Below, one piece after another: positions 13,796-63,749 of a stretch of DNA of 64,000 bases. Position numbers and translations under genes: made by a program. The DNA comes from Bispira polyomma (lineage: Eukaryota), in contig OZ287758.1 of assembly GCA_965649765.1 (NCBI GenBank), positions 3,348,001 to 3,412,000 on the forward strand, given 5' to 3'. A model generated the notes under the pieces. The model saw only the letters and a list, made by a program, of their open reading frames with translations. It was not told where the DNA came from and searched no databases. Within the stretch, counting starts at the first letter, position 1; every line of letters begins with the position of its first letter.

Positions 13796-14380
13796 TTAAA
13801 AGTCTGATCAAAGAGATTTGGTGAAAAGGACCCCTACACTCATTGACTTATATCTGTTTAGAACAATAATCTTTATTTCCTCATAAAATGCAAACATTAT
13901 TAATTCTGCTCACATTCGCAAGATAAAAAAAGAGACAAAAATTCTCTTGCCATCTAACCTCACAGGATCGTAACCTTAGACAAATATAGGGCCAGCCAAA
14001 GGTAGTCGCCAATTAATAAAAAATGTATGACATTAATAATTTCATTGTGTTAATAACATTCTTTAATATTTCAGATACCAACAGTAGGTAAATATCGCTT
14101 AGTTAACAAATATCTATGAGTCACTTTAAACTTGCAACAGCAATACATCAATAATTATACTAAGTAAGTCCAATTCACAGAAAGGCATAGTAAACCATTC
14201 CCCGTGTGTATATCTTATATCTGCCTAATACCTTGGCAGTGTAGCCTAAGACCATGTACATGACAAGGTAGATGCCCACTATGCAAGAAGGAGGAGGTAG
14301 GGGTCTACTGTACTGGGCTTTAAAATTTAAGTCCAGTGCACAGTGGTGGCCCAATGTGCAACAGAGGAGGAGGTGGGGGT

Positions 14381-14930
14381 CCACTGCCCAGCCTCAGTTC
14401 TCTTAAGTAAGGCTAGATCCCACTCTCCAGCTTCAGTTCTCTTAAGTAAGGCTAGAACCCACTCTCCAGCCTCAGTTCTCTTAAGTAAGGCTAGATCCCA
14501 CTCTCCAGCTTCAGTTCTCTTAAGTAAGGCTAGATCCCACTCTCCAGCCTCAGCTCTCTTAAGTAAGGCTAGAACCCACTCTCCAGCCTCAGTTCTCTTA
14601 AGTAAGGCTAGATCCCACTCTCCAGCCTCAGTTCTCTTAAGTAAGGCTAGATCCCATTCTCCAGCCTCAGTTCTCTTAAGTAAGGCTAGATACCACTCTC
14701 CAGCCTCAGTTCTCTTAAGTAAGGCTAGAACCCACTCTCCAGCCTCAGTTCTCTTAAGTAAGGCTAGATCCCACTCTCCAGCCTCAGTTCTCTTAAGTAA
14801 GGCTAGATCCCACTCTCCAGCCTCAGTTCTCTTAAGTAAGGGTAGAACCCACTCTCCAGCCTCAGTTCTCTTAAGTAAGGGTAGAACCCACTCTCCAGCC
14901 TCAGTTCTCTTAAGTAAGGGTAGATCCCCA
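14381..14930. repeat. 39-bp minisatellite, ~14 copies
   Basis: Unit CCCACTCTCCAGCCTCAGTTCTCTTAAGTAAGGCTAGA(T/A). Confidence 0.95.
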
Positions 14931-14991
14931 CTTAATAAGTTGTAATCACCAGATGATCTCATGATCACCACTTAATAAGTCATGATCACCA

Positions 14992-15098
14992 GGTCCCGTA
15001 TTCACGAAAGGACTTAGCCAGGTCTTAGGCTCAAATCTAGCACAAAAGTATAATGATTTAAGCCTAAGACTTGTATAAGTCCCTTCGTGAATACGACC
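14992..15098. mobile_element. Palindromic MITE (PIF/Harbinger-like), family also at 20808-20917 and 31610-31720
   Basis: Inverted repeats GTATTCAC...GTGAATAC and CTTAGGCT...AGCCTAAG. Confidence 0.6.
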
Positions 15099-15277
15099 NN
15101 NNNNNNNNNNNNNNNNNNNNNNNNNNNNNNNNNNNNNNNNNNNNNNNNNNNNNNNNNNNNNNNNNNNNNNNNNNNNNNNNNNNNNNNNNNNNNNNNNNNN
15201 NNNNNNNNNNNNNNNNNNNNNNNNNNNNNNNNNNNNNNNNNNNNNNNNNNNNNNNNNNNNNNNNNNNNNNNNNNNNN
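15099..15277. other. Assembly gap (N run)
   Basis: Run of N. Confidence 1.
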
Positions 15278-15987: not shown

Positions 15988-16026
15988 AAATGAAAGTGAA
16001 AGTAACTATAGGAGGTGTACTTCCCC
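15988..16026 (+). promoter_or_regulatory. ISRE/IRF-binding element plus adjacent NF-kB-like site
   Basis: AAATGAAAGTGAAAGTA (15988-16004) matches GAAANNGAAA with a third partial half-site; GGTGTACTTCCCC (16014-16026) is kB-like on the reverse strand. Confidence 0.55.
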
Positions 16027-16029
16027 GCC

Positions 16030-16183
16030 AGTTGTGTGAATCAGCCATATTGAGAAATATTTAGACGGAAATCTCATTTGGATAAAGATCCCAAAGACAC
16101 CGGAAAACGACTGTATTTAATATTTGTGAGGTTATATAGTACATATAGCTGGTCTCTCTGAATATATAATAACACGTGTCCAG
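16030..16183 (+). other. Probable non-coding first exon (5' UTR) of the CARD-kinase gene
   Basis: Ends in a consensus donor CAG|GTGAGT at 16184 and lies directly downstream of the ISRE/kB-like motifs; the start is approximate. Confidence 0.5.
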
Positions 16184-17542
16184 GTGAGTGACAAGTGCCA
16201 ACTATATCATTTGGACAGTTTTAATAACAGAGTTGTGTAGTATCATTATTTATTCTGTATACACAGACACAGATACACTTGATCAATATTTGGATGGCAT
16301 ATCGGGGTGGGCTTGCACTAGCCGTAATTAAGATACGTTTAGCGGGATCAGAGTGTTATTTTCACTATACAGTCCTATATCTTAAGCCCCAGTCCCACCG
16401 GATTTACGTTCGTCTATGTTAACTACGCAAGGTTGTCACAAATATTTGATGCAAAAGTCCACTCACAAGTCGATTGATATTTTTTTATTATGTCAAAGGT
16501 GTTAACTTACGGAGAGATCCACGTATTTGTACATCTATACCTGTAAAGACATTGACACGTTAAAGGCTGTAATGTTACGTTTAGCCATGTCATGTATTAC
16601 GTTATATGTGCGTTCTACGTAATCAGTCGGAAGGCTACACTTTTTACGTTGATATAGGTAATACTATGCCAATTTCGAACTATTCTTACGCTAACACTCG
16701 TTCAGCTATGTCATAAGGGCTGGGCTCACTACATTTATGTTAGCCAGAATTTAAATGATAGATTTATTATTTCATGTATAAAAATACAACTATAGACATG
16801 TAAATTTGTGATATTTCCGTCCAACTTATAAATCTTTAGTACAATCTGAAGGTAGGTTCTATGACTCGGAATATCAATTAGAGTCGGTCTGGATCCTGTA
16901 AAACGCCCAGTGGCCAAAAAGGCTTTGGCTTTCCCCCAATATTGCAATTGATTAAATAGCAGTATGTACATGAATACTTCACCTAAAATTTTCGTTTTGC
17001 TATCACAAGAAAGCAGTTTTCAAAGTTATAGTACCGACCCAATCTGAAGCCATTCTGGTGGATCATATTTTCAGGGAGTACTCCTTACTGAGAATTGTGG
17101 GCGTGGCTTATGTTAGTTACTACAGTAAGTACCCTCGGATTTTCTTCTATTGATTTTTCTCTTGAAGTCACTGAAATTGAAAAAAAATATTGGTTTAAAA
17201 TAGGTGTATCAAATATTTGTAACGTTTTTAAACATTTCAAATGTTTGCTTGTACCAAACAATGCACACATGTGCATGGATAATTGATAGTTGGATCATTT
17301 GTATGATTTATCAATCCAAATAAGGACAATAGACATGCCAATTATATTAACGGCAAAGCTCACGTAAAGAGTAAAGTTTTAGCATCGTGGAATCAAAAAA
17401 TCAATACTGTATGGCGTCTATCAAGTTCACCTCAGTCTGATGACGTAGTACAGGGTATATACCCTGGAACAGGGTGGCAGGGCGGCAACTTTATTAGGGT
17501 GCAACATGCAAAATTCAATTAAATAAATGGATGTATCTATCT

Positions 17543-19254: not shown

Positions 19255-19582
19255 GAATACATTCAGAGATATAGTAAAGTCATTTTAGTGAATATCTCAA
19301 GGGACCATGGGAAATACTCCACTCCACTGAAGCTTTTAAGAATTTCACTTAACAGGGTGAGTTTTTAAAAGAGAAGACTTTTTGTGGGGACTATCAAGTT
19401 TTTTTCTTTAGATACAAAGAGATATCGACTTCTCAAACGGTTACTAACATTGTGTTTGACTGAACAAAAATGTATATTTGGGGAGTGAAATTGTTACTAT
19501 AAAGTTAAAGTTGAAAATTTGGATAAAATGAAATTTGGATAATAGAGTTTCTCCACTGTTACTTTGTGTCTTAGATGCGAGA

Positions 19583-19780
19583 ATGGCAGATTACAGAGAA
19601 CCCCCTCATATCATCATCTTCAGGAGATGGTACAAACAGCTGATCCACTCCATCAATGTCCCAGGTGTCACTGCCTCCCTGATGTCTGCCAATTGTATGA
19701 CTGTCAGGGACTTGGAACGAATCAACATTAAGTGTGCGAACACAGGGCAGATTGCGGCGTCAGAGACACTAATGACAGAC
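19583..19780 (+). CDS. CARD-kinase coding exon 1 (N-terminal part of CARD)
   Basis: Acceptor tgtcttag at 19574, ATG in strong context (agaATGG), donor GAC|gtaagc at 19781, phase 0. Confidence 0.8.
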
Positions 19781-22700
19781 GTAAGCTACAATATTTGAGT
19801 TGTCTTCACCAGGGGTTTGAAGTGAGCGGGAAATACAGAATATGGCTAAATACTAGAAATCACTGGGAAACTAGACCGAATAATCTGTCCCTGTTTTGCG
19901 AGATTCCTTGCTGATATTTTGGACGGCTGAATCACGAAAAGGGACAGAACGGCTTGCATAAGGAAAACGTTGTAAATTTAGACAGACGTAACATGGCGTA
20001 CAGTGTTGTTTCAATGATTTTGGTTTAGTTTTTATTTTATATTAATTGATATGCACCATATTGGCATAAACTAATTGAAAATCGGCAACTATATCATATA
20101 TAAGGAATGAGGGGATGTATTTATTTTTACCAGATTCTATATATGCCGATTCTGATTCAACGTTTTGCTTATGGAGGCCACACTGTCCCTCGCCATGCCG
20201 TCAGTATATCAAAGTATCAGCGAGGGCAGAATACTCGGTCAACTGGGAAACATGAGTATATGAATCCACCGGCCAATTTCTTTTAGAATAAACATAGACA
20301 TCCGGCTTATATTTTTTGACTTTCATCAAAGGAAAATCAAAGACAAGACTAAAATATATTATGGAAACATTGTTAGATAAATACATTTTCATATTTTATA
20401 TACTACAAGTATCCTGTTGATTGGGCAAGGTTCATTGCAGGAATAACATCATTGGGCAAGATGTGAATATGCCATTGCATACTGATTATGACTCAGGCTA
20501 TGTCATAGGACACAGGATTCGTTCGGTTTTTGCTCTTTAGTAGATACCTCGTATCAATAATGCACATTAAAAAGATATAAAACAAACAGACTCTATTGGG
20601 TGAGCGTGAGCCATCCCATATTTGACCTGTGTTTTTGGCAAAACTGACAGGCTGCTGTGTTTAGCAGACGTTTGTCTGAACCACATAACAACGACTACAT
20701 AGAACTTGCAGAATCTTCAAACTGGCACAGTAGTTTTGTAGACCTTATTCAGTCATTGAGGAAAGGCATGTTTCATGCACGTTTTAAGAAGAAGGTACAG
20801 GTTGGCAGGTGTGGTATTCACAAAAGGGTCCAAGTCTAGAGCATTGTCCTAAATCAAGCACAAAACGATACCAGATCTATGACAGAGTCTTGGCTTAGCC
20901 CTTTTGTGAATACCACTCCATGCGTCTAACTGAAACAGTGTGTTTAGGCTCAGTCAAAGGTTGTCTAAGCAATATGTCTAATTGCAAATAACAGCAACAT
21001 CATATTTGGAATAATGTCTTAAAGCATTCACCTCGCTATATATCTATTCAAATAACAGTATATGTCTTGCTTTTATAGTTTAGAAGTTTTCGGGAATAGG
21101 TTACAGATACCTGGAGTTACTAAAACACACAACACAGAGGACTACTTGCAGCATTCAATAACAGCCTCATGTATCGTTTTTCATACAGGGCAGTTTGCTG
21201 TACTAACAATTTCCTATTGTGACGAACTAAAGGAGAATTAACTAATATTGTCGATTTCTTGTCTACAGACAGAGGTTCTGCAAGTACTAAATGCTGTTGA
21301 CGACCTGGGTCTTTATAGAGTTAACTTTTAAGTATTAAGCTACAACAGGCTACAAACTACATATGGCCATTGAGAAAAATTTGATATTTGTAATTGAGTT
21401 GGTGTGTATGATTCATTGACCTTGGACTTATTGATTGGTTGGGGTTTCCACACATTGTATAGGCAGTTTCACTGGTTGGGGAAAGCATTGCATACTAGTT
21501 GGTCAATATATTGCACTGCAAACTTTCCCACATAAAGTCGCAACTGATATTCAAACCCACATCATCAGAGGTGGGAGGCAATTGTGCGAATCATCACACC
21601 ACTGAGCCCCCCCCCCCCCCCCCCCCCCCCCCCTAGCGGACCCTGGAGTAGTGATCTGACTTAAAACATTTCACTGACTCATTGAGGCTGGTTCATGGTG
21701 TTTTGGTTGAGAAGTTGTCGACTGATTCAGACACTTTTTGTAAACCAAGTGTACTCTGTGTAAGTGGAGAAATACTGACCCATTGTAGGTGATGCTGAGG
21801 AATCCTGACCCAGACTGCTTTAAGCATTTTACAGAGGCCTTGGAGTCATCAAATCACCAATATGTAGCTGAGCAGATGAGGTCAGAATACCAGCAATATC
21901 TAGGTTAGTACCGAATGCAGTCCACCTCTTCTAAACTTGTAGAGTTCGGATTTTAGAATGTATTCTTCATCCAATTTGTGCTGCCGAGCTGGTAGAAATT
22001 ATCTTTTGTTAGCTTTCTGTACTTTTTCTGTGGTATGGTGTAGACGTTCAAAGTTAACTTTGATGGTTCTAGGTCACAGGACAGGATAATCACATAGTGC
22101 AGGACAGTCGATACCAGGGAGATGAGCTCATGAAAATAACAGAAAATTAAAATTTAAAGTCACAGGACAACCAAGTTATAATTTAAAATAAAGTTATGTC
22201 CACCCAGTATTTCTTGAAATATTATTTTACCGACGATTGCGTCTGTCTTCCGTTATCTGGCATTTTAGCAACATCCCCAAGAATCTTTAGTCTGCCACTG
22301 GGGATAGTACCTCGTGACAGACGACCGCAATTTTAAGTGGTCATCCAAGCAAGTTGGTGAATGCCTGTACACATTTTGCTCAAGGATGTTATCCCACCAA
22401 ATGAAACTAGCGGGACCAAGTTTCCCGAGTGAAACCCGGGACCTTCTGATCATCGAACTAACTCCCTAACCACCAGGCCACGGGGACCACATGTATTCTC
22501 TGGAAAACTGATTTTTGTAACAATACGGTACATTTGAAAATATGGAGCATTTTGTGGGTTTTTAGTTTGTCATTCAGTCAACAGAGTAATCTGTGAGACT
22601 ACTGGTACCAGTGCTGTTATATTCTGTATTCATGGTGTCTCGATACGGAGGACAAATCAAGTGTAGTTTGCTGATTTAATGTTACATCACATAGATAATG

Positions 22701-25700
22701 CATTTCACCAGTCAAGTTCCTTGGTATATAGCCGCTGGTATTTCTTGGTTTCAGTAACAATTTTGGCATGGCTTTCTAAGCAGTGTACTAAACATCAGAC
22801 GGAAACGGTTATTCAGATTTTACTATCACGGAATGTTAGTTTTTTAAAACATTGTTCCCCCGGACTATTTTTCGTCATTAAATGGCTATATCTCAGTCAA
22901 TATTTAACCAATAATTTTCATTTTTATATCACTAAAAATGACATCTTATTTCCTTTCGGACAGTTTTAACTGTTTTGAATTCAAAATAAATTATGTAGAA
23001 GACATCTATTGAAATTGAACTAAAGATCAATATTAAATTTATAACTTGTATTCCTTGTTATTCAACTGGCTATGGTATTTATGTATGACTTAATGATCTT
23101 AGTGGTAACGTTCAAGGTCATTGATGAGAAGGAAGCTGATGTTATGCCTAGGCATTTAGATCTTGCCTGACTGTTTTTACTAAACTAAACTTCAACTGAA
23201 TATGGACTGAGATATTTGAAGAGAAAGTTCACATGCATTCAAAATTATATAAAAAGGCTCAAATGTACAGTGTTTAACTTTTGATCTCTGTGTGATTCTC
23301 GAAGCCTCCAAAGTTATAGTTGTGATCATTCAGGAAGGATCACTTGTACAAGTTGAAAACTACTGAAACTGTTGATTAAATTGAGTTCTAGAGTTTGAGG
23401 AAAGATTTGCTATTGCTGTACATGTATTTACAGACTATGAAACTAAAATGGCTCAAGGGCCTGCTACTGGACTGGTAAGTAACAGCCTAATGTGTAGTAA
23501 CAATGGGTAGTAACTGTTTCCTGTAGTGAGAAACTGAAGGATATTCTGAAAAAAATAAACTAATGTTTTTGAGGCTTCAACTGCTTGCCGTCAAACACAG
23601 GTTTTGGGAGTAACTAATGCTGTCGACTGCTTGTCAAACACATGGGCGCACTATTGGTATTACAAAGGGCCATGGGCACCATTGGTATTATAAAGGGCAA
23701 TAAGTACCATTGGTATTATAAATGGCCATGGGTACCATTGGTATTATAAAGGGTCATAAGTACCACTGGTAATATAAAGGGTCATGAGTACCATTGTTAT
23801 TATAAAAAGCCATGGGTACCATTGGTATTATAAAGGGTCATAAATACCAGACATGGGGCGAATACATGTGAAAAGTATTCGAATACGAATACTTTCTAAT
23901 TTTACGAATATGAATGCAGATATGAATACACAGATTTCGAAAGTATTCAAATACGAATGCGAATACATTTGCAATGTATTCATGAATGCATTCATGAATA
24001 CTTTAACTTCAAAGAAGGTTTAATTTACTCTGTTTTAAATTATAAGTATAGTATTATTAAAGTAAAATTTAGTGTCTTCAAAACATTTACTCAAAATAAC
24101 CTTTGACATTAATTTGCATTTACTTTAACACTAACAACAATTTACAGAACAACAATTTATGTATCTAAATTGAAATTAGTTTAACCTACTAAGGACCTAT
24201 TGATAAAACAAAGGCTTTTGATAAATTTATAACTTATTTGATATCATAATTTAGCTTTTATTTAATATACTTTGAACTGCACTGAAAAATGAAAAAAAAA
24301 AATGATAAAAAGGTTTGCATAATCCTGATAATAAATAATAGCTTCATACACTTGTATTCAATAGTTATGTATTATTTAATACACAAAGTTTTTCCTTTAC
24401 AAAAGGTAAAGTAAGGTGAAGTAAATACCATAGCACAGGTCTATCATTGAATGTTTTTCTCTAAATATAGTAAATATGGTAAATATTACTCTTAACTGCA
24501 TTCATAAACATTAAGCCCTCAAATACAGGAAATAGTGACACTAGCCACACAAATGTTTGAGTAGAGGCCCTTCTATTCAGTGGTCTGCCACCTATTGTTT
24601 ATGTACTCTTTATACTCTTTATTATGCACACTGATTAAACCTTTCATTTACTAGACAAATTTTAAAATCTTTGGGTTTGATAATGATTGTGATGATTTGA
24701 TTTTAACCAAGAAAAAGCATTATTTATTTTCTATTGTATTGATTCTCTCAGTTGTATATGTCCATACACTCCACTTGCTAGGATTTTAATATTTTTAATG
24801 TAAAATTTTAACTGGTTCATGTGATATATACTACATTATTTACCAGACCAGATTACATCTTGCTGGTTTTATTTTATTTATTTTGCCAAAAATAGAAATG
24901 TATTCGAATACGAATGCTTTAAAAAATGTATTCGAATACATATGCAGAATACAAATACCCTATGCCTGATAAGTACCATTGGTATTATAAAGGGCCATGG
25001 GTACCATTGAGTATTACAAAGGGCCATGAGTACCATTGTGTATTACAAAGGGCCATGAGTACCATTGAGTATTACAAAGGGCCACGAGTACCATTGGTAT
25101 TATAAAAGGCCATGGGTACCATTGGTATTATAAAGGGCCATGGGTACCATTGGTATTATAAAGGGTCATAAGTACCATTGGTATTATAAAGGACCATGGG
25201 TACCATTGAGTATTACAAAGGGCCATGAGTACCATTGGTATGATAAAGGGCCATGGTGGCCTAGTGGTTATAAGCATCTCCTTTAAAATTACTGGCTTCT
25301 CACCTCTGGGAATCGAATCCCGCAGATTCCTTCGTCATAGAAGTAAGTTGTCAGACATACATGTTGTGGGTCGATGGTTTACAGTGCACCGATTTCACCC
25401 ACCACTAAACCGGGCCGTCCCAATAAGGCCAAAGCTGTTGAAAAAGTGGCGTAAAACCCTGCAGAACCTCTACTAACTCAACAAATTTGGTTCTTTTTCA
25501 ACCTTTGATCAAATAGAAAAGAGCATTTCTGTATAAAAACGAGATACATATGGGAGAGTGGCAATGAATTCATCCAATCAAATGTTTGCACAAAAAAAGA
25601 TTGGATAATAGTGGTTCTAATGTGTTTAGATTTGCCTTGTATTAATTGCACACCATCTGCTGTCTGAATTTTGTATCCACTGACAATGCTGTTGACCTAG

Positions 25701-27266
25701 GTTTGTGGGTATGCATTTGCTTATCCATAGATGTCAACAGCTTCTTCTCTATAACTATAGTTGCTATTAACTGTTTGATATTTTATTACAGGTACCTCAG
25801 GTTTCTAAATATCAGTGGATCCAAACCTTTTTTTTCTATCTTTCAGAAACAACACAATCTTCCTTCTCCAAAAACAATGCCAGAATCAGTCCCCAAGTTT
25901 GCACACATATACCTTATCGCAGACAATATTTTCTGTTCTAAAGACCCCCCATAAATAATTATAGCCCCAAATCGCCCCCCACCCACCCATCGCCCTCCGC
26001 TTGTCAAGTGCTCAGGATTATTTTACATCACCAAACAACAATATCTTTACTACAATAAAACAGCATGGAAAATTGTTATTAATCTCACTTTCAAGCATTG
26101 TTGGTAATGTGAATAGTGACCTGTATTTAATTAATTTATGATAAGATGAAGAAACAGAATGCCTATACAGTTTATTCACCCTATTTATTCTTTAAAAGCA
26201 TGCAGACAATTCTGTAGATAATTTAATTTTTTCATACCAGGGAGCCGTAGGAACAAGGACAGCATGGACAAACATGGAGCAAGATCAAAGGCAAATACTG
26301 TATCCACCAGATGAACAACTATTTCCTGATGCTGCAATCACTAAATGTATACCGTTTGTTAAAGTAGCCGACCTGAAGATGGACTTCAACGATAGGCTGA
26401 TGAGAGGAAGCTATGGCACGGTTATTCGTGGTACGTTGAATGGCACCAGTGTGGCGGTAAAAGAAGTGAAGGTGAATGCTATTAAACGTACCAAAACGAA
26501 GACGTGGACAGAATTGTACGAGGAACAGGTGAATCGGGAATTCCACGTTAGTGCCTTTGTTCGCCATATGAATGTGGCTTTCCTACTGGCATACGCACTA
26601 CAGAATGATACACTGTTCTTGGTCTATGAGCTCATAGACGGACACACCATGGAGCAGGTAATCCTCGATCCTCAGGTACAACCTATGTACCACTTGGACA
26701 AGAAGGAGAAGCTCTTCTTGACCACACAGATTGCCCAAGCTCTGGCTTTCTTACACCACTGCAATCCGAGGGTCGTCCATGGGGATATCAATCCTGCCAA
26801 CATCATGGTCACCAGAGACAAGAACCTGGCAATGCTATTCGATCTGGGAGTCAACAAACTAAAGGAGAGGAATGCCGTCACAACAACGGGAGGGAACCTG
26901 TCACCCGGCACACCCATGTATATGGCCAGGGAACAGCTGCTTGAGAATATGAAATCAACAACATGCACAGACATCTGGTCCATGGGGGCATCGCTGTACG
27001 AGATCTTCTTTGAAGAGGACGTCTGGGAGGTTGATGGGGGCGACACCATGAAGGGTATCAAGAAACTGCTCCTGGCCAATGAAAGACCTAAACTGATAAA
27101 GGCCCCCAAGGAAGGGTGCCACAATCTAGCCCGGCTTATTGACAAGTGCATGCAGACTTTGGACACAAGTCGCCCACCTGCCTTAGAAGTGCTGAAGGAG
27201 TTATGGTTCATAGAAAAGACGTATGACGATGCTCAGAAACAAAAGAATGCAGACTACAAGCCTTAG
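19583..27266 (+). CDS. Spliced CARD(-like death-fold)-kinase, ~459 aa; coding exons 19583-19780, 21789-21903, 23434-23474, 26241-27266
   Basis: All junctions are GT-AG and phase-compatible (0,1,0). The joined N-terminus MADYREPPHIIIFRRWYKQLIHSINVPGVTASLMSANCMTVRDLERINIKCANTGQIAASETLMTD|VMLRNPDPDCFKHFTEALESSNHQYVAEQM follows the CARD helix pattern. Linker DYETKMAQGPATGL|GAVGTRTAWTN reads in frame into the 330-aa kinase ORF. Confidence 0.8.
21789..21903 (+). CDS. CARD-kinase coding exon 2 (C-terminal helices of CARD)
   Basis: ttgtag|GTG acceptor; VMLRNPDPDCFKHFTEALESSNHQYVAEQMRSEYQQYL resembles the CARD C-terminal motif (RGPxAFxxFxxALxxxxQxxLA); donor G|gttagt. Confidence 0.8.
22265..22490 (-). 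mobile_element. Diverged tRNA-SINE
   Basis: Minus-strand head GGTCCCCGTGGCCTGGTGGTTAG with a degenerate B box. Confidence 0.45.
23434..23474 (+). CDS. CARD-kinase linker mini-exon
   Basis: ttacag acceptor, gtaagt donor; 41 nt converts phase 1 to phase 0, exactly as needed to join the kinase exon. Confidence 0.7.
23641..25254. repeat. 28-29-bp minisatellite (CCATGGGTACCATTGGTATTATAAAGGG) split by the hAT MITE
   Basis: Arrays at 23641-23847 and 24969-25254. Confidence 0.9.
23848..24968. mobile_element. hAT-like MITE inserted into a minisatellite
   Basis: TIR CAG(A/G)CAT(G/A)GGG, 8-bp TSD ATAA(A/G)TAC, subterminal GTATTCGAATAC palindromes; related fragment at ~32080-32221. Confidence 0.75.
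25248..25480 (+). mobile_element. Diverged tRNA-SINE
   Basis: GGCCATGGTGGCCTAGTGGTT head, CTCACCTCTGGG, ATCGAATCCC B-box variant. Confidence 0.6.
26241..27266 (+). CDS. Protein kinase domain exon (TKL-like Ser/Thr kinase, atypical motifs)
   Basis: Motifs MRGSYGTV (G-loop), VAVK, HGDINPAN, DLG, GTPMYMARE, DIWSMG, RP; acceptor ttttttcataccag at 26240. Confidence 0.92.
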   Translation, partial: GAVGTRTAWTNMEQDQRQILYPPDEQLFPDAAITKCIPFVKVADLKMDFNDRLMRGSYGTVIRGTLNGTSVAVKEVKVNAIKRTKTKTWTELYEEQVNREFHVSAFVRHMNVAFLLAYALQNDTLFLVYELIDGHTMEQVILDPQVQPMYHLDKKEKLFLTTQIAQALAFLHHCNPRVVHGDINPANIMVTRDKNLAMLFDLGVNKLKERNAVTTTGGNLSPGTPMYMAREQLLENMKSTTCTDIWSMGASLYEIFFEEDVWEVDGGDTMKGIKKLLLANERPKLIKAPKEGCHNLARLIDKCMQTLDTSRPPALEVLKELWFIEKTYDDAQKQKNADYKP

Positions 27267-34400: not shown

Positions 34401-37400
34401 TGTATTACAATATGTTGTCTTAATAAAACTAAATTGCGACATACTGATATATCAATGTATTGCTACACCCTTAGTTAAAGTCAAACTCGCACAATAAACA
34501 AACCTCCATTAGGAATTCCCAGTCATAATCGTCTTCAAAGTGACCCCTGTATCTGAAAGTATAGCAAATCAAAAACAATACCTGCTTGTCCAATAAGTAT
34601 ATAACTGAGCAGTCTTATTGTACAAAATTGCGTCCAAATCTGAACACCTTTAAATATTGCCATTTACATCTTGTTATGGGCTCATTTTTGTTTTGTTTCA
34701 TTAATGCATCTGTAGTGTACTTCCTGCCTAGTGGATCTAGTGACTTCAATAATGTGATTTTGCACTAAATACAGCACAAATCTGGTAATTATTTTAAAGT
34801 TGTCCTGTAACTCCCGTTAGAATCAGAATAACACATTCCAAGGTATACTGTAAGTTTTACCACTCTTGGAGTTTTAAAACTCCTGTCGCGCTTTAGAAGA
34901 TGCTAGCATCAATAAAGCGTGTTAAACATTCATAATAACAATAAGAAGAATAAAACGGATGTGACAGGTGTCTTCCTGTTTACAGTTATGGCTGACATAC
35001 AGTTCTGTTGACATTCTATGCATTATCAAATAATTAGGCTGGGAACCAAACAGAACTAAACAAAACCAAAATACACAAAAAATTGCAACGGGAATTTTCT
35101 TTGGAAAATCTGGTTTTAACTAATATAAGGAATTATTGCAACACGACAAGTGGACTGAGTCTGAGTGAGCACTCACTTGGTCACCATAGCCTTGAGGTCA
35201 TTACACAGGTGACTGTTGAACAAGAAGTGGTTGATGGGTTCTTCCAGTGACTTGGACGTCTCAAAAGGGTTCCATGCAGTGGACATGGTAAAAGCAGCCA
35301 GCAGACCACTGTCTCTGCCCCGATGTGTCAGGTAATTGCTCAGAATGATCCTGCAACACAAGTTAAAACAAGAACAATCTCCAAAATCGTGTACAAAATA
35401 TTGGTAAATTTTTCTGGAGATCTTTTTTTTTTTCTTCAAATTTTGTAGATTCTCGCCTGAAAAAAATAAAATATTATGCCATACATGGAAATGAACGGGT
35501 CGCAATATTATTAGATAAAACCCCCCTACCCCTTGGAGCAAATGGTATGTGTACTGCAGTTTGCAGAGACAACGATCTACCATTCATTACAAGCGGCACT
35601 TTTCGATCTGAAACGATGTGACATGATGTTTGCTAGACAAACCGAGAATTGTCTGTTAAACTTTTGCTAAACCAACCCCAACCTAAATTAAATTTGCTAA
35701 ACCTAGTCCAGCCTAAATTATATAGTCAATCGCGCAATCATTACTTTTATCACTAGGATGAAACCTATTTTGTACCTATTTTTATTGCATTGTAATGTAC
35801 CTGCATACGTAAATATAGATATTAAAATTTGTTATTGATTTTTGAAATTTTTTTTAGAGATTTCTGTCTTTGCTTTTAATATTCTATGTAAACATTATAT
35901 TTACCGTGTTAGCTGAAGTTAAGGTCAAAATTTGCCAAATAATATTTTAAGTTAAACATAGGAATCTGTTGGACTACCTTTTGCAAAGGTTGTGGTAGTT
36001 TGTTTCAATTTTTAGTAGTCTCGGACTACTGGACTACTGCATATGTCGAGCCCTGTTAATTGTAAATAAATGCCTACCCTCCGAGTGAGACTCCTAGATT
36101 ACTGTATATGTCAAGCCCTGTTAACTGTAAATAGATGCCTACCCTCCGAGTGAGACTCCTGCCGCTATGACGGGGGCCTTGGGGTACTTCTGTGTGATGT
36201 GGCCAATCACAGCACGCAAGTCTTCAGTCTTGGTGGCGCAGTACGTTTTCGGGGTCTTGGGATAGAGAAAAAAAATAAGGAAAAGAAAGTTCCACACTAG
36301 AGATGAAACAAGAAATCCATTTACTTTTAAATCTAAGGGTTCAAATACTAGCTATAAAACTGACATCATATTTGAATTCAGTGCTAGAAGCATTATATTC
36401 AAATGACTAGTGACTGTTACAAGTAGAGAGAGTGAAAACAATAGTAAAACTGGATATATCAGACCACAATACTTTTAGTAGCAGCTGGACCAGCGGACCC
36501 TCTAGCTTTTTTAGAACTTCTCTGTAACTTACAACTTTGGGACTCGATTATGCATATTTTACTACTTATTGGCAGAATTTTAGGAAATGCACCCAAAGGC
36601 ACATTGTCGCCTAAGAAAAATACAACTAATAAATATATATGAAAACCCAACTTTATGGTATTTTACACCTACTTTTGTAAAGTTATATTGTAGGAAAAAC
36701 AACAGAAGAGTTTAGGTATGTGTCAGCACTTTATTTGGTTGGAATTAGTTTGAAGTGAGTGATTATCGATGCACTTCACACACTAAGACTTAAAGCTTTA
36801 AATGTTACTTCCATAGTCTTTATAAGTTAAGTTTCAGGTGGACTTCAAGTTTTCTTGGAGCATACTGGCCCAGAATACCAGAGTTACACCATTTTAAATA
36901 TGAGTTTGAGCATGTACCTTTAGTTCTGCACCTCCATTTCCTCTGTTGTTGAACACCACTGACCTAAAAATAGAAATAACCGGAAAAACGTAAAATGGAC
37001 GTTTTGAATATATGTGCGTATGTAAATAGCAATATAGGTCAGTACATATGGGTATGAATTCTTAGCCCTGGCAAGACTAGGTACTAGGCTAGTGGTATAT
37101 TTAAATCTATACATGGGTCAATGTTTATTCAGAGTGAAATAGTGAATCAACACCAAACTAGTGAACTGTCTGGTGTATATGCCTTGAGCTAATTACAAGG
37201 TGAACGTTTACACTTTTCCCGCAAAAATTGGCTGTCTATATAAACCCCAACATCTACACAATCTGGGAGTTAGTTTGCTGTGTGGCTTGTTGCGTTGAAT
37301 CTTAGGGAGGAAGACATATTGGAGGTCATATTGAAAACCACGTGGGGAGAAATTTTAAAACTACTGATTTTACACGAGCTCCAAACTGTGCTTTTCCGTC

Positions 37401-40400
37401 TGATTCAATGACAATGACTCGTAGTAAGAATAAAGTAACTGAAGACCAACCAGAAGAAGTAGAAGCGGGTGGTGCTACTGGAGGTCTTGAGACGCAGCTA
37501 GACGCTGTTCTGAATGGGTTGACTGCCGTGACCGCGAGGCTAGATGCACAGGACAAGAGGCTTAACGAACAAGAAGAAAAGCTCGTGTTGAAGGAAGTGT
37601 CGGGAGCCTTGCCGTCGGCCCAGAATTCACCTAAGGATGAAAGAAGTGAGCTACCATCCCTTGGACTACTGAAGACGGACTCCCGAATCCAAGCTGAAGT
37701 CGACAAGAGATTAAGAGCCTATCAACACACCTCTAGACTTGAGAACAAAGGTAATAGTTCAGACAAAGTTATTAAATCAGGACGATTCAGGGCTGGTTCA
37801 CATGTTATAAAATGTACCATCGCATGGCCTCAAGACTTTTGTAGTTTACCTTCTGGTAGCACTAAGCAGCCTACTTATGATGACCTAAGTGCCCCTCAGC
37901 TCTTTCAAGGCTTATTGTTTTCAATATTGGAGGAAACTAACGCTCAACGTAAACAAAACATGCTCGTTTATTACACGAATTTAATGCAGGACGACAGAGC
38001 TGTCTCTTCCAACCGCTAAAAAAGCACATGCTATAGTTTTGACGGAGATAGAGAAGGGAAAGATCAGTTGGGATCAAGTAGAGCTAATTGATAAGGTTAG
38101 GGCTAGAGCCACACAAAGATTGGCTACCCCCCAGACTTATGCCACAAAACAATCTGGTGGTACCAATGATAGTAGTAAAACAGAAATCTGTAGGTTTTTT
38201 AACAAAAACATGTGCAAGTTTCAGGCGGACCATGTTAAAGATGGTGTCATGTATAGTCATGCTTGTTCATTCTGCTTTAAAACAGTAGGAAGAAAGATTG
38301 AGCATAGGGCCATTAATTGCATGCGACAAAAGAAGGTAGTCACAGTGCAGACAAGCCCGCGCAACAGGTTTAATATTGTCACTCGGCCTACTTCTCAAAT
38401 AATGTCAAATAATGCATTTAACAGAACCCAGGCCATTAATGGTGTAACAGTTTATAGTGAAGTACTAAATGTAAATGTTGACGACTATGATAAAGTCATA
38501 TGTAGTGAAATGAACACATGTGATAAAAATCAACTAAGCGTTAATAAAATAGAACAAAATAGTATAAGTAGAAAATGTAGTAAACGACAGTATGTGAAAG
38601 GTAAAGTAACCTATATCAATACTAATGACCATACTATGTACAGTGCTGGCAGTAAATGTCATAATGTATTATGCAGCTGTTATACACAGCCACGTGGGAT
38701 CAATAATATTGCTCAAGTGGGGTGCAAACAGGGCGAATGTGGAATGTGTATGAATGTCGTTTGTAGCTGCTATGTGCAGCCACGTGCGTGGGGCAAATGC
38801 CACGTGGGGCACATGCAGGGCGCATGTAAAAATTGCATGTATGACAAGAGCACAAATAACCATGAAATACTTAGGCCTAATAATAATGTTTTGAGGACTC
38901 AGTGCGTCTGTAGAAATACAGAGGTCTCATACATGCTGTATAGAGACTTAACTGATGAAAAACACGTGTGTAGTCAAGACAATTATGACAGCACAAACAA
39001 AAGCAATAACATAGTTCATACAAGTATTGATATTTGCAAACATGATAACTCCAGCCAAAATGGCAATATTGAAACAGTAGTACATAATCACAATGAACAC
39101 GCCACAGCTTCATTTATCTATGATAATGATCAGGTTCACGTTGTTTCTAACACGGGGGTTTTGGCCATGTGTCGAAATGAATATATAGGTCATACACGTG
39201 TTAATATGGGTAATAATGCTAGCTCCAGCCAAAAGAGTAATATTGAAACAACAGTTGGAAATTACCAGGAACACGCTGGGGCTACATTCACCTATAATAC
39301 TGATCAAGTGCATATTGTTTCATATACTGGGGTTTTGTGTCAAAATAAATGTTCTGAGGAAACACAACAACAAAATTTCCTTATGACCAGTTTTAATGAA
39401 AGTGTTATAATGGGAAGTATACAACTTCCACAAACATGTAATAATACACGTAGCAACTATAATGCACTCGAGTATACTTCACTTACAGCTCAAACTACAA
39501 CGGGAAGTATAAAACTTCCACAGGGATGTAAAAATACACCTAGCGATTACAATGCACTCGTGTATACTTCATTTACAGCTCAAACCACAACGTGCACAAT
39601 GTCAGCACACGTTCACATTCAGGGCCACACGGCCTACAACTCTAGTAGTATAAGTAACAAAGTTTTTAGTCAGGAAACAAGTTTATTGGTGTATACCACT
39701 ACTCATAGTAATGTGGTTTGTACAGGAACAATTTTTAACACAACTGCTTTTAGTGATTGCACAGATCAACTTGATGGCAATGGTTTTAGTGGAATAAATA
39801 TGTGTAATGATACAAGTGCATTATGCACTTTAGGACAGGATTTTACGGGGAACATAAGGGACACATACAGTTATAATAATATATACTCGTACACAACACG
39901 TCCCTCTTCTGCTGAGCTGGAATTGCAAACCAGTGATATTACAAAAAAGTCAATGGAAGTTGCCATTATTAGCAGCAACCTTACAGTAAATCTCAACATG
40001 GAACATGTAAATAATATACAGAAAAAGGACACTGGTATTGGTTCCACTAGCAGTAATAGGGATGTTTCAGTGGTTTATGGTTTTAATTGGTTGCAAAAAC
40101 CTCATCACATAACGTGTTCTGAATATAACGTCCTACAGTATGACAATTTACAAGAGTGGGTTATCAAGGCTCATAATGCTGTTAAAAGTACAAATATACC
40201 AAACTATAAAGGGGCCAGATTGTTAGTCCCCTCACAATTAAAAATTCGGGAGTGGAGGTCGTTATTTAAAAATTATAAATATAACATAATTTGCGACTTT
40301 ATCGCGTATGGCTTTCCACTTGACATGGATTACAGCAGTTTTGTGTATAACACTCATATCACAAACCATAAATCTGCTTCCCTAGCAATAGAAGGGGTTG

Positions 40401-43400
40401 ACACTTATTTTAGCACAGAAATCAAATATGAAGCTATTGTGGGACCTTATAAGGAATATCCTTTTACAAAAACACACGTTTCACCTATTATGGCACGACC
40501 AAAATTAGATGGCTCTACTCGAGTCATTATTGATCTTTCCTGGCCACATGGGGCCTCTGTCAATGATAGTGTCACTAAGGATGTATATATGGGCATTGGT
40601 TACAAGTTAACTTACCCCACAGTTGATAATATTGTAAAACGTATTATCCAGGTGGGCGACAATGCACTAATTTACAAGGTTGATCTAAAGCGCGCGTTCA
40701 GAAATATGCGTATTGACCCTTTAGATTACCCTGTATTAGGTTTACATTGGAAAAATAAGCAGTATGTGGATATTGCCTTGCCCTTTGGATTTCGGACGGG
40801 ATCCGGAATTTGCCAGCCAATTACCAATAGTATTAGACACTTAATGAAAACACAGAATCACTGGCTCGTCAACTACATCAACGATTTCATTGGTGTAGAG
40901 GATCCTGCGTATGCGCAGGGCGCATACAACGCTTTATTAACTTTATTAGAAAAACTTGGTCTTCCCATTAGTGCATCAAAACTTGAAAGTCCAAAGAACG
41001 AAGTTACATGTATGGGCATCAATATTAATGTAACAGAAGGGAAATTAACTATTCCCCAGGAAAAAATTAGGCAAGTAAAACAAATGTGCCAGCAATGGGC
41101 CTATAAAAGTACAGCTACTAAAAATCAGCTGCAGAAATTAACTGGTAAACTTTTATATATACACAGATGTGTGAAACCTGCGAGACTTTTTGTCAACCGT
41201 ATCTTGCAAACCCTTAGGGCTGCTCCCGCAAAAGGCACCATTAATCTTGCAACAGAATTTCATCGTGACATCAACTGGTTCAACAGTTTTCCAGATATAT
41301 TTAATGGTTCAGTCGAAATACACAGGGAAAGTAGCCGTGTAACTGACAATATATTTGTGGATGCATCACTTTTTGCAGTCGGGGCTAAATTTAACCAGGA
41401 AGTTTACACGCTCAATATCCCTCAACATTTTCGTAACTATTTAACCATAGTGCATTTCGAAATGGCAAATATTGTCCTAGCACTAAGAAACTGGGCTTCC
41501 AGCCTTAGTAAGAGATGGGTTACCATCTGGTGCGACAACCTTGCAGTGGTTAACGTGCTTAATTTTCACAGAACTAAAGACCCATTTTTAATGGCATCTG
41601 CTAGAACTGTTTGGTTAATAATGGCCTCATATGATATCAATATAACCTTTAAACATATAAAAGGAGAAGATAATACTTATGCAGACATTCTATCTAGATG
41701 GCCTAATTACAATATGAATACTAACAATTCATATGTTAGAGTCTTATACCAATGTCAATGGTGTAAGCCACAGGAAAAATGGTTGGAGCCAAATTGGCTC
41801 ATATGATTCAAAATTAATTTTAGCCTTGAAGTAAAATAAAATGTCTTGTAAAAATTTAAATAGAATTTAAAAAATTAAATTTAATAAAAAGAAAATTAAT
41901 TTAAAATATTTTCTTTCTTTTCTACTGGTTACTTCAAAGCTCCCATGTAACTGTTCATGTTAAAAATTAGAATGTCAGTGCCTGCATAAGCATAATATTC
42001 ATGTAACCGCCTGTCCTGTTGTCTGAACTATACAGTTCTCTAGACAACAGGCGGCAGTGATACAACATACTGCTCTCGTCTGTTGTCTATTGTAGAGAAC
42101 CACCTCTTGGATGTGCTGGTATCCTCGGCTGACAGAAGGATTGCGTCTGCCCTGCGTCCCAGAACCTCCTCTGCCTATGCTGCTAGGTTTCGACAGTTTG
42201 TTGCCTTCCTGGTGGCGCTGAACATTGACACTCCACACCATGAACTTGCAATACTTTCCTACATGGAATTTTTATGTAGAAATGGTCTTAGAGCCTCTTC
42301 CTTGAACAATGTTTTAGCAGTTTTAAATCATTACTTCAGCTTATATCAGTGGCCTAATGGGGGGCTTAAGACTAAAAAAGTGCAGCTACTTGTGAGATCA
42401 GTCAGAGCTAATGCTCCATTGTTAATGAAAATTAAAGGTGTTATCTCAGTTGAGATGTTAAAAAGAATAGTCAACAAGGTCAAGACTCTTGAAAATGCTC
42501 CTGTATTTCATGCTTTATTTATGGTAGCTTTCTTTGGTTTTTTCCGCCTGGCATCTCTGGTGTCTCCAGTAATGTCGTCATATGATAAGTCAATGTTGCC
42601 AGTGGTAGCTGACGTGATCTTTTGGTTCCCCAGGTTTGCATGTAATTAGTAAGCATGCCAAGAACATGCAGCGATCAGGTCCAACTTCCTGAGCTTCCGG
42701 GCTCTGAACTTTGCCCAGTTATGGCTATAAGAAATATGTTAAGTTTTTAAAAATCACAAAGAGTCAACCTTTGTTTCAAATATTTGTTAACAAGAAACTT
42801 GTGATCCTATCAGCTACAAAAGTCAGAAAGGTTTTCAAAACTTTGATTGTAGATTTAGGCTTACAGCCCACAGAATTCGGCTTTCATGCTTTTAGGCGCA
42901 GTGGCGCCTCCCTTGCTTTTAACAATAATATGCCCCTTGATAAGCTTCAAGTACATGGTAATTGGAGGAGTGATGCCATTTGGGCACACCTCAACTCCAC
43001 TCCCAAGGCAGCAAGTGCTGTCCCACAAGCATTTAAACAAATCCTACTACAACATTAAAACTTTTTTGGGTTTGGCACTTTTAAAAACTAAACAAATATC
43101 TCAAGGCAACCCCACAGAGGGATACAAAATGCATTAATTGAATATTTGTAAGGTTAAATATTTTAAGGTGTAGATAAGTCTAGGTACACTTCATAGTAAG
43201 TTTCCTGAAATAAGATACTCACCTTAATTTAGTTTGGGCTTCTTAAGCTTAGGTTCAGCTTACCTACTAATTAACGGGGTAGAAGTATAGCTCACCTCCA
43301 GGTCAGGTTGCAGATAGCTAACCGTAAGCACAGGTTATGGTAGTCGTAATTAATACAGACTCAAGATAAGGTAACCTTAAGTTGACCTCTACTGTTGTGT

Positions 43401-63620: not shown

Positions 63621-63749
63621 GAAAGATGATTGATCAACTGTGATCAAAACTTTAAAGAACCTCCTATATTTCATAAAATAATAAAAGTTTTGTAAATCTA
63701 TGAATAAAATATCAATCATGTGAAATATATTTTATTTTTACTCCTGCCT

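Follow-up and report, generated by a model that had tools for sequence, protein, structure and literature searches.

The 64-kb stretch of DNA analysed here (the window, in which position 1 is the first letter) carries on its plus strand a four-exon frame predicted to encode an N-terminal CARD, a linker and a C-terminal kinase. The predicted coding exons total 1380 nt in the window sequence, or 459 codons and a stop, as a preliminary description of this DNA had proposed (~459 aa). GT donors and AG acceptors lie at exactly the junctions that it gave (19780/21789, 21903/23434 and 23474/26241), all three introns being GT-AG with phases 0, 1 and 0. The features of the locus are as follows.

15992..16003, + strand: IRF-E/ISRE-like motif GAAA-NN-GAAAGT, a predicted binding site in the likely promoter
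16004..16183, + strand: probable non-coding first exon; start approximate, donor GT at 16184, no ATG inside
19575..19780, + strand: whole of exon 1, with an 8-nt leader before the ATG; approximately CARD helices 1-4
19583-19780, + strand: coding part of exon 1; 198 nt, phase 0, 66 codons, ATG at 19583
21789..21903, + strand: exon 2; 115 nt, phase 1, 38 codons and 1 nt; approximately CARD helices 5-6
23434..23474, + strand: exon 3; 41-nt linker exon, phase 1 to 0
26241..27266, + strand: exon 4; 1026 nt, frame open for 341 codons; short linker, entire intronless kinase and stop
26397..27209, + strand: TKL-like Ser/Thr kinase domain (Pfam Pkinase, E 1e-35)

The probable non-coding first exon is alignable in four paralogues (C12, C10a, C10b and C1); its donor, CAG/GTGAGT, is kept in C12, C10b and C1 and reads CAA/GTGAGT in C10a.

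Conservation of the gene in paralogues and a second species

In this genome exon 1, exon 2 and the kinase each occur in exactly seven close copies, and these are always found together. Exons 1-3 and their splice sites lie 5' of the same kinase in the six paralogues and in a second species (ENA ERZ22147071, locus L021), where the exon order is that of the window gene. Across the eight loci compared, namely the seven close copies and the second species, exons 1 and 2 keep their donors and exon 2 its acceptor at 8 of 8, and in the seven loci other than the window exon 3 measures 44 nt and runs from phase 1 to phase 0. Exon 1 is 70-76% identical to the window copy in the six paralogues and 52% identical in the second species. 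Additionally, at least four more distant paralogues carry both CARD-like exons and then the kinase, in order and on one strand; the genome contains at least 11 copies of the gene. This co-occurrence and conservation of exons is beyond chance, and at the level of sequence the CARD-kinase gene model is confirmed as real. Long ORFs in the paralogues were also considered as intronless CARD-kinases and rejected; they consist of linker and kinase.

It is very improbable that the locus consists of two neighbouring genes duplicated as a pair, one CARD-only and the other an intronless kinase. The kinase ORF does have an ATG of its own, at 26274, but this ATG is not conserved; and while the exon 3-4 junction of the window copy is likewise not conserved, the frame of exon 3 runs open, free of stops in every copy, into a phase-0 donor that is conserved, and in all six paralogues the kinase frame opens, in phase 0, exactly at a conserved TTTTAG acceptor. 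Furthermore, the CARD-then-kinase order is kept at no fewer than 12 loci in two species.

The dN/dS of the window kinase against every paralogue is 0.33-0.36, over 320 codons without a stop, and that of the window exon 1 is mostly ~0.3; against the second species the window copy gives 0.22-0.30. Judged by its sequence, the window copy is a dispersed, early-branching duplicate that is still under purifying selection. The N-termini of 54 kinase relatives drawn from other sources contained no CARD, and the sole further CARD hit comes from the same second-species sample. Within the sequences searched, the CARD-kinase gene is lineage-restricted and the host-embedded clade is tied to two related species only. 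At other loci this kinase is preceded by ankyrin exons. The COX1 gene reads in the invertebrate mitochondrial code, and a comparison gave no close match bearing a name.

The N-terminal CARD and the residues of the kinase domain

The Pfam CARD_2 model matches exon 1 in 8 of 8 copies over model positions 10-58 (best E 2e-7) and picks up again in exon 2 at positions 65-92 (best E 0.017 among the copies), the two exons matching consecutive CARD_2 stretches over the length of the domain. Scored exon by exon, the window's exon 1 (E 2e-4, 21.6 bits, model positions 10-58) and exon 2 (E 0.056, 13.9 bits) each fall below the Pfam CARD_2 cut-off of 28.2 bits. Exon 1 is fitted by CARD_2 in all eight copies versus three of eight for the CARD model, and the Death domain gave no Pfam match at E<=10 in the N-terminal exons. 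When exon 1 alone was folded, the predicted model contained four helices (pLDDT 66). A Foldseek search with this model returned 13 weak rows, 12 of them CARDs and all with E>1; the weak fold matches of the model include the CARDs of MDA5, RIG-I, Apaf-1 and caspase-9. The VIA comparison was also weak (Z<=3.6 for CARDs), and five of the ten rows of an Atlas search were CARD-bearing proteins. Comparison of the CARD exon sequences with the PDB yielded chance matches only, none of them significant for a solved CARD. Further CARD loci in the genome number in the dozens.

In four paralogues an in-frame stop lies directly 5' of the ATG, and the CARD is therefore truly N-terminal. Together with the CARD_2 matches in all copies, these stops bear out the N-terminal CARD and the domain order of the preliminary description; of the CARD-like six-helix fold that it claimed, the profile match holds, and the structural model covers the four helices of exon 1. 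These observations support a gene that would encode an N-terminal CARD, then a linker, then a kinase. The window gene resembles MAVS, RIG-I and MDA5 in that CARD_2 fits each of the two CARD exons better than any other family and that MDA5 and RIG-I are among the fold matches, and differs from them in having a single CARD joined to a kinase, without helicase or membrane anchor.

The window kinase keeps the beta3 Lys, the helix-C Glu, the catalytic Asp and the Mg-binding Asp, and has a Tyr gatekeeper and a non-RD loop, HGD. Its AlphaFold model was poor (pLDDT 45) and was left out of the evidence. Among 26 host rows the Tyr gatekeeper occurs in 24 and HGD in 25. Several features are nevertheless private to the window copy or mark it as changed. 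The exon 4 of the paralogues begins ~100 codons further 5', and this stretch has been lost from the window copy, whose exon 4 acceptor is a CAG that lies inside the exon in the paralogues and is not conserved; the acceptor at 26241 is the only in-frame, open and pyrimidine-rich AG between 25700 and 26300. The catalytic-loop Lys is replaced by Asn, in this copy alone among the 26 host rows, the first Gly of the Gly-rich loop by Met, and the Cys before the Mg-binding Asp by Phe. Because of the short linker and the weakened catalytic loop, the window copy is probably a low-activity or scaffolding member of the family.

A stronger version of this idea, which we consider possible but rather doubtful, casts the window copy as a decoy with little or no catalytic activity on the same CARD scaffold, damping or merely scaffolding signalling in the manner of IRAK3 and IRAK2; poor use of the new acceptor, if it occurs, would lead mostly to a CARD-only product. 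The three substitutions are consistent with this, as are the loss of ~80 linker codons and of the ancestral acceptor, and an ATG at 19575, present only in the window copy, that is out of frame and opens an overlapping uORF of 22 codons. Decay is also visible in other copies: C7a and C7b have a deletion in the Gly-loop, and C7b has in addition an Asp to Asn change and an inverted exon 1. Against a decoy, the window copy retains the beta3 Lys, the catalytic Asp and the Mg-binding Asp, the residues whose loss marks a pseudokinase, and the helix-C Glu is intact, and the kinase dN/dS given above holds against every paralogue over its stop-free length. The decoy reading of this one copy does not conflict with the explanation favoured below for the family as a whole.

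Kinship of the kinase with IS3EU transposon cargo

Among 1.84 billion proteins, the closest relatives of the kinase belong to a family carried by IS3EU-type DNA transposons, and in this exhaustive search 42 of the 49 nearest non-host relatives with a long N-terminus have one N-terminal region in common. Three transposon-type kinase genes lie tail-to-tail with an rva_4 integrase gene, and two of these three sit in 6.7-kb elements that are 98.5% identical to each other and carry TAC..GTA terminal inverted repeats and target duplications of 6-7 bp.

L038:8009-14724: IS3EU-type element with kinase; 6-bp target duplication, TA..TA termini, rva_4 gene inside
L043:8087-14766: IS3EU-type element with kinase; 7-bp duplication in an A-run, TA..TA termini, rva_4 gene inside

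IS3EU is defined by TA..TA termini, a target duplication of ~6 bp and an IS3-like transposase (PMC10045372), and the features of the kinase-bearing elements agree with published descriptions (PMC10045372, PMC12730594); by sequence, both elements fit IS3EU. In fungal IS3EU an alpha-kinase lies opposite the transposase (PMC12730594), whereas the animal cargo is a conventional protein kinase; a literature search found no description of animal IS3EU elements with such a kinase. At two of the five loci read, no integrase was found near the transposon-type kinase, and a search with one query did not find the transposon-type N-terminus in this genome.

In the tree, host and transposon-type kinases form one clade (support 100/99), and in the free tree the host clade nests among the transposon-type kinases, joined to one of their rows, P0014 (97/95). 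Sequence comparison thus shows the kinase to be kin to IS3EU cargo kinases. Because an AU test did not reject monophyly of the transposon-type kinases (p=0.33), a transfer from transposon to host is left as a suggestion. The window kinase shares a clade with the cargo kinases of IS3EU/GingerRoot elements; the window gene differs in that spliced host exons replace the cargo N-terminus, and in that it lies outside any such element. rva_4 was found close to none of the CARD-kinase loci, nor do inverted repeats bound the window gene, and the idea that the whole gene moved inside a transposon was rejected for want of bounding repeats or a transposase. The interpretation in the preliminary description is partly borne out; it had missed the kinship of the kinase with transposon cargo, the multiplicity of copies, and the shortened linker and weakened catalytic loop of this one.

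The window gene shares with IRAK1, Pelle and IRAK4 an N-terminal death-fold domain, a linker and a C-terminal TKL-type kinase, and the Tyr gatekeeper and HGD non-RD loop are traits of IRAK1/Pelle (PMC3498205). The kinase could in principle descend from IRAK1/Pelle (or RIPK) as a rapidly evolving branch without introns, in which a CARD took the place of the death domain; the transposon likeness would then reflect capture of this host kinase by transposons or long-branch attraction. Besides the shared traits, IRAK4 is the best animal PDB match, and the AU result is compatible with either direction. We regard this origin as improbable, since the transposon-type kinases score far higher than IRAK4 with the alignment A1 profile (140-210 versus 80 bits) and with the broad host profile, A5 (187-255 versus 145 bits, the best PDB kinase reaching 157), and IRAK1 and RIPK2 are in neither profile's PDB match list. 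In addition, kinases of the transposon type turn up in bivalves and in other samples, and a hemichordate has short members of the family, whereas the host clade could be traced to its two species only. Neither these scores nor the tree, in which plant RLK/Pelle rows stay in the outgroup (100/99) and from which animal IRAK and RIPK were left out, group the kinase with IRAK/RLK-Pelle. The family further departs from the IRAKs in having a CARD rather than a death domain, its kinase in one exon, and at least 11 lineage-specific copies.

RIPK2 has the same two domain types in the opposite order, kinase-CARD, as against CARD-kinase at all loci of this family; it is not among the 60 best PDB matches, and no RIPK is among the best PDB matches. 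Among RIP kinases a CARD is known only from vertebrate RIPK2, and amphioxus has DEATH-kinase forms (PMC9573974). On these sequence comparisons, the kinase is neither RIPK2 nor IRAK, and by analogy CARD-mediated recruitment of the RIPK2 kind is its likely mode of action.

Regulation and the proposed immune role

The IRF-type motif is the only match in the window, with a chance expectation of about 0.75 per 64-kb window. It is kept at the homologous place, with two spacer bases changed, in C12, C10a, C10b and C7a (five of the seven own copies, counting the window), and is absent in C1 and C7b; in the second species it lies 1.4 kb before exon 1. IRF genes are present in this genome. The kB-like sites in the window are not conserved in the paralogues. 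Immune genes typically show birth-and-death turnover of their copies. An immune role receives only indirect support, from the motif, the non-RD loop and rapid duplication.

The gene might instead serve cell death or development, for example on a caspase or Apaf-1 CARD platform, as the Apaf-1 and caspase-9 CARDs among the weak Foldseek rows and the many other CARD loci would allow. We think this unlikely, though less so than an IRAK origin, in view of the better fit of CARD_2, an RLR/MAVS-type model, the conserved IRF-type motif and the turnover of copies.

The explanation that we favour as a whole, by a modest margin of confidence, is a real, spliced and lineage-restricted CARD-linker-kinase gene that acts in immunity and has a transposon-kin kinase. 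IRF, acting at the conserved motif, would induce the gene in infection; its RLR/MAVS-like, CARD_2-class CARD would then join the oligomer that the CARDs of a sensor or adaptor form once it is activated; and the clustered non-RD kinase domains would signal in the manner of IRAK1/Pelle on their death-domain scaffolds or of RIPK2 on NOD CARDs. By this analogy the product is most likely an infection-inducible, CARD-recruited kinase, working like IRAK1/RIPK2 and independently built. In origin, host CARD exons would have been joined to a single-exon kinase of the IS3EU-carried family, which would have lost the transposon-type N-terminus and gained the Tyr gatekeeper and the HGD loop; among 35 transposon-type rows none has the Tyr gatekeeper, and there is no Gly among the loop residues listed. 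More tentatively, and with less than even confidence, we propose that an IS3EU cargo kinase was domesticated once in the lineage, fitted with CARD (elsewhere ankyrin) exons, brought under regulation by IRF and led by convergence to the IRAK1/Pelle layout of death-fold head, Tyr gatekeeper and non-RD loop, yielding a family that reads RLR/MAVS-type CARD filaments directly.

The death-fold-recruited kinases IRAK, RIPK and DAPK are old families, and a literature search found no description of a CARD-kinase family. The present family looks like an independent and recent version of the death-fold kinase design, with the CARD in front, and may represent an immune signalling enzyme newly made from a transposon passenger gene. 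If so, transposon cargo and host exons would constitute an invertebrate route to new immune signalling enzymes, the convergence on IRAK1 features would be testable, and, in an animal that has IRF genes, the family would provide a candidate for a kinase with direct action on CARD scaffolds.

Gene model and conservation of the CARD-kinase family

The window gene consists of four forward-strand exons totalling 459 codons and a stop, with every intron GT-AG and in phases 0, 1 and 0. The coordinates and junctions proposed in the preliminary description proved exact at each GT and AG site.

Exons of the window gene
19583-19780, + strand: exon 1, coding part; 198 nt, GT donor, phase 0
21789-21903, + strand: exon 2; 115 nt, AG acceptor and GT donor, phase 1
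23434-23474, + strand: exon 3; 41 nt, AG acceptor and GT donor, phase 0
26241-27266, + strand: exon 4; 1026 nt, AG acceptor, ends in stop

Searches for the CARD and the kinase were made singly per exon. Six close paralogues of the kinase exon occur in its own genome (59-62% identity; contigs C1, C7 (two), C10 (two) and C12), and the six further genome matches to exon 1, like the six to exon 2, are precisely those adjoining these paralogues. The same exon order is found on a second-species contig (ENA ERZ22147071), with a kinase 54% identical. The exon-1 donor and both exon-2 splice sites are kept in all eight loci, and exon 3, 41 nt in the window copy, is a 44-nt phase 1-to-0 exon elsewhere. 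An in-frame stop immediately 5' of the ATG in four paralogues makes the CARD the true N-terminus. For the window copy, dN/dS is 0.33-0.36 in the kinase and mostly about 0.3 in exon 1; comparison with the second species gives 0.22-0.30. Exon 2 has too few codons for such a reading. Comparison of loci thus identifies a real gene, conserved and under selection, and the CARD-kinase model very probably holds for the family, the proof being comparative.

Profiles of both CARD exons revealed at least four more distant C10 loci with exon-1-like, exon-2-like and kinase sequences in order on one strand; the genome carries at least 11 CARD-kinase copies, which belong to a set of some 45 related single-exon kinases, part of it arrayed on C4 and C14. 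Paralogue C7b, in which exon 1 (G000:C7:48155476-48155673) is inverted relative to the other exons and the kinase is without the Mg-binding Asp, is by its sequence a broken copy. At L012/L016 (G000:C10:22.267-22.270 Mb), CARD-like exons are followed by a 763-codon open frame that encodes two kinase domains in tandem, a candidate CARD-kinase-kinase. Another C10 kinase, far more divergent at 27% identity, has a CARD match 3 kb upstream on its own strand (G000:C10:747902-751740), and the two may form a separate CARD-kinase gene.

The weakest link of the window model, yet a plausible one, is the exon-4 acceptor at 26241. Paralogue exon 4 starts with a conserved TTTTAG acceptor some 100 codons 5' of the kinase; the window copy has AT-rich DNA in place of that stretch, and its acceptor matches a CAG that is coding sequence in the paralogues. 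This acceptor is the sole in-frame, open, pyrimidine-rich AG within the final 600 bases of the intron.

The N-terminal CARD

The N-terminal CARD of the preliminary description is well supported by the agreement of several weak tests. Pfam CARD_2 matches exon 1 in all eight copies (model positions 10-58, best E 2e-7) and, consecutively, exon 2 (positions 65-92). A predicted model of exon 1 alone retrieved CARDs in 12 of 13 Foldseek rows (NOD1, MDA5, Apaf-1/caspase-9, RIG-I), every E being above 1, and CARD-bearing proteins in 5 of 10 Atlas rows; its VIA Z-scores were low. The profile matches agree with the CARD-like domain proposed for residues 1 to about 104, and the exon-1 model (pLDDT 66) has four helices.

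Kinship of the kinase with transposon cargo

The kinase is TKL-like and by score neither RIPK nor IRAK. A clade profile searched exhaustively against 1.84 billion representative proteins gave the orthologue at 582 bits, then about 90 single-domain kinases, some second-species host copies among them, at 140-220 bits, against 96 for CTR1 and 80 for IRAK4. A broader host profile scored transposon-type kinases at 187-255 bits, the top PDB kinase at 157 and IRAK4 at 145, a comparison biased in favour of the transposon-type set, itself chosen by score. Bivalves and a hemichordate supply the named family members. Among relatives with long N-termini, 42 of 49 have an N-terminal region in common, frequently together with an Ig-like domain; these N-termini contain no CARD, and the region of the transposon-type kinases has no match in Pfam or Atlas.

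In three of five loci read, an rva_4 integrase gene lies tail-to-tail with a transposon-type kinase. Two 6.7-kb elements, L038 and L043, are 98.5% identical with intact ORFs, which marks them as recently active; their terminal inverted repeats start with TAC, and their target duplications are 6-7 bp. They fit the definition of IS3EU/GingerRoot, namely TA..TA termini with target duplications that are usually 6 bp long (PMC10045372). In fungi, IS3EU carries an alpha-kinase opposite the transposase (PMC12730594). The animal element-borne protein, of 700-750 aa, has an N-terminal region, in many with an Ig-like domain, and a C-terminal protein kinase.

Animal IS3EU-type DNA transposons (kinase protein tail-to-tail with transposase)
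L038:8009-14724
L043:8087-14766
L042:3825-12833

Reading of the locus excluded that the window gene lies inside a transposon.

Other elements in the window
14327-15277: 36-bp tandem repeat, yields spurious ORFs on both strands
15099-15277: N gap beside this repeat
37342-43058: DIRS-type retrotransposon layout; gag-like ORF, 1255-codon RT ORF, split tyrosine recombinase
43834-44457 and 54280-54678: RT-like fragments
60926-63637, - strand: LINE ORF2 pieces with RT domain

In a tree of 62 rows (LG+G4; 12 outgroup rows of plant, protist and bacterial kinases; partial and duplicate rows excluded), host and transposon-type kinases group in a single clade (100/99), establishing their kinship at the sequence level, and the host clade joins one transposon-type row (97/95). 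Monophyly of the transposon-type rows is not rejected (AU test, p=0.33), so the tree alone fixes neither donor nor direction of transfer. We favour transfer from transposon to host, as suggested by the single-exon structure of the kinase and the limited distribution of the host clade.

Related kinases may carry other heads. In the second species, ankyrin-repeat ORFs lie 5' of two sister kinases on the same strand (L039:1360-11044 and L045:1224-10978), candidate ankyrin-kinase fusions of the host clade. Tandem arrays hold about 15 (G000:C4:97.6-99.15 Mb) and about 4 (G000:C14:26.0-27.9 Mb) single-exon host-clade kinases, with no CARD-like exons found upstream; directly upstream of the C14 copies is a same-strand open frame of 170-200 codons with no Pfam match. 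A bivalve family member, P0058, has N-terminal macro domains.

Host copies resemble IRAK1 and Pelle in a Tyr gatekeeper (24 of 26; none of 35 transposon-type rows) and in having the catalytic Asp preceded by Gly, the non-RD form (25 of 26; mostly Gln or Arg in transposon-type rows). A Tyr gatekeeper is found in IRAK family members, and the Gly form in IRAK1 and Pelle (PMC3498205). In the tree, built without animal IRAK or RIPK, both are derived states of the host clade, which points to convergence; descent of the kinase from IRAK is a minor alternative.

Promoter motif and proposed mode of action

An IRF-E/ISRE-like motif, GAAA-NN-GAAAGT, lies at 15992 (15990-16190 examined), ahead of an ATG-free segment with a donor at 16184; C12, C10a/b and C1 preserve both segment and donor. 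Since chance alone would give one match per 64 kb, the weight lies on conservation of the motif, which is kept in C12, C10a, C10b and C7a with an altered spacer and both cores intact, and is absent from C1 and C7b. In the second species it occurs as a triple repeat 1.4 kb 5' of exon 1, where the introns are no longer alignable. The kB-like sites are not conserved in the paralogues. The genome encodes several IRFs.

The window kinase retains the beta3 Lys, helix-C Glu, catalytic Asp and Mg-binding Asp, and is thus no pseudokinase by the usual definition. Asn replaces the catalytic-loop Lys in this copy only (1 of 26 host rows), and Met the first Gly of the Gly loop; such changes generally lower kinase activity. 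An out-of-frame ATG in weak context (19575) overlaps the gene start. That the window copy is mainly a weak or decoy member of its family seems rather unlikely.

No description of a CARD-first kinase family, nor of an animal IS3EU cargo kinase, was found in the literature (InterPro and Repbase lay outside the search), and other invertebrates may well have unrelated fusions of a CARD with a kinase. Among RIP kinases, one survey finds a CARD in vertebrate RIPK2 only, and DEATH-kinase forms in amphioxus (PMC9573974). The window gene belongs to neither IRAK nor RIPK2.

We propose that infection would activate an IRF, which would induce the window gene; the CARD would join an activated CARD oligomer, the RLR/MAVS type being the likeliest to judge from the CARD_2 match, and clustering, by analogy with IRAK1 and RIPK2, would activate the non-RD kinase or allow scaffolding. 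We lean slightly towards this reading as a whole, that of an IRF-induced, CARD-recruited kinase acting by clustering, whose mode of working would make it a death-fold-recruited immune kinase of a known kind.
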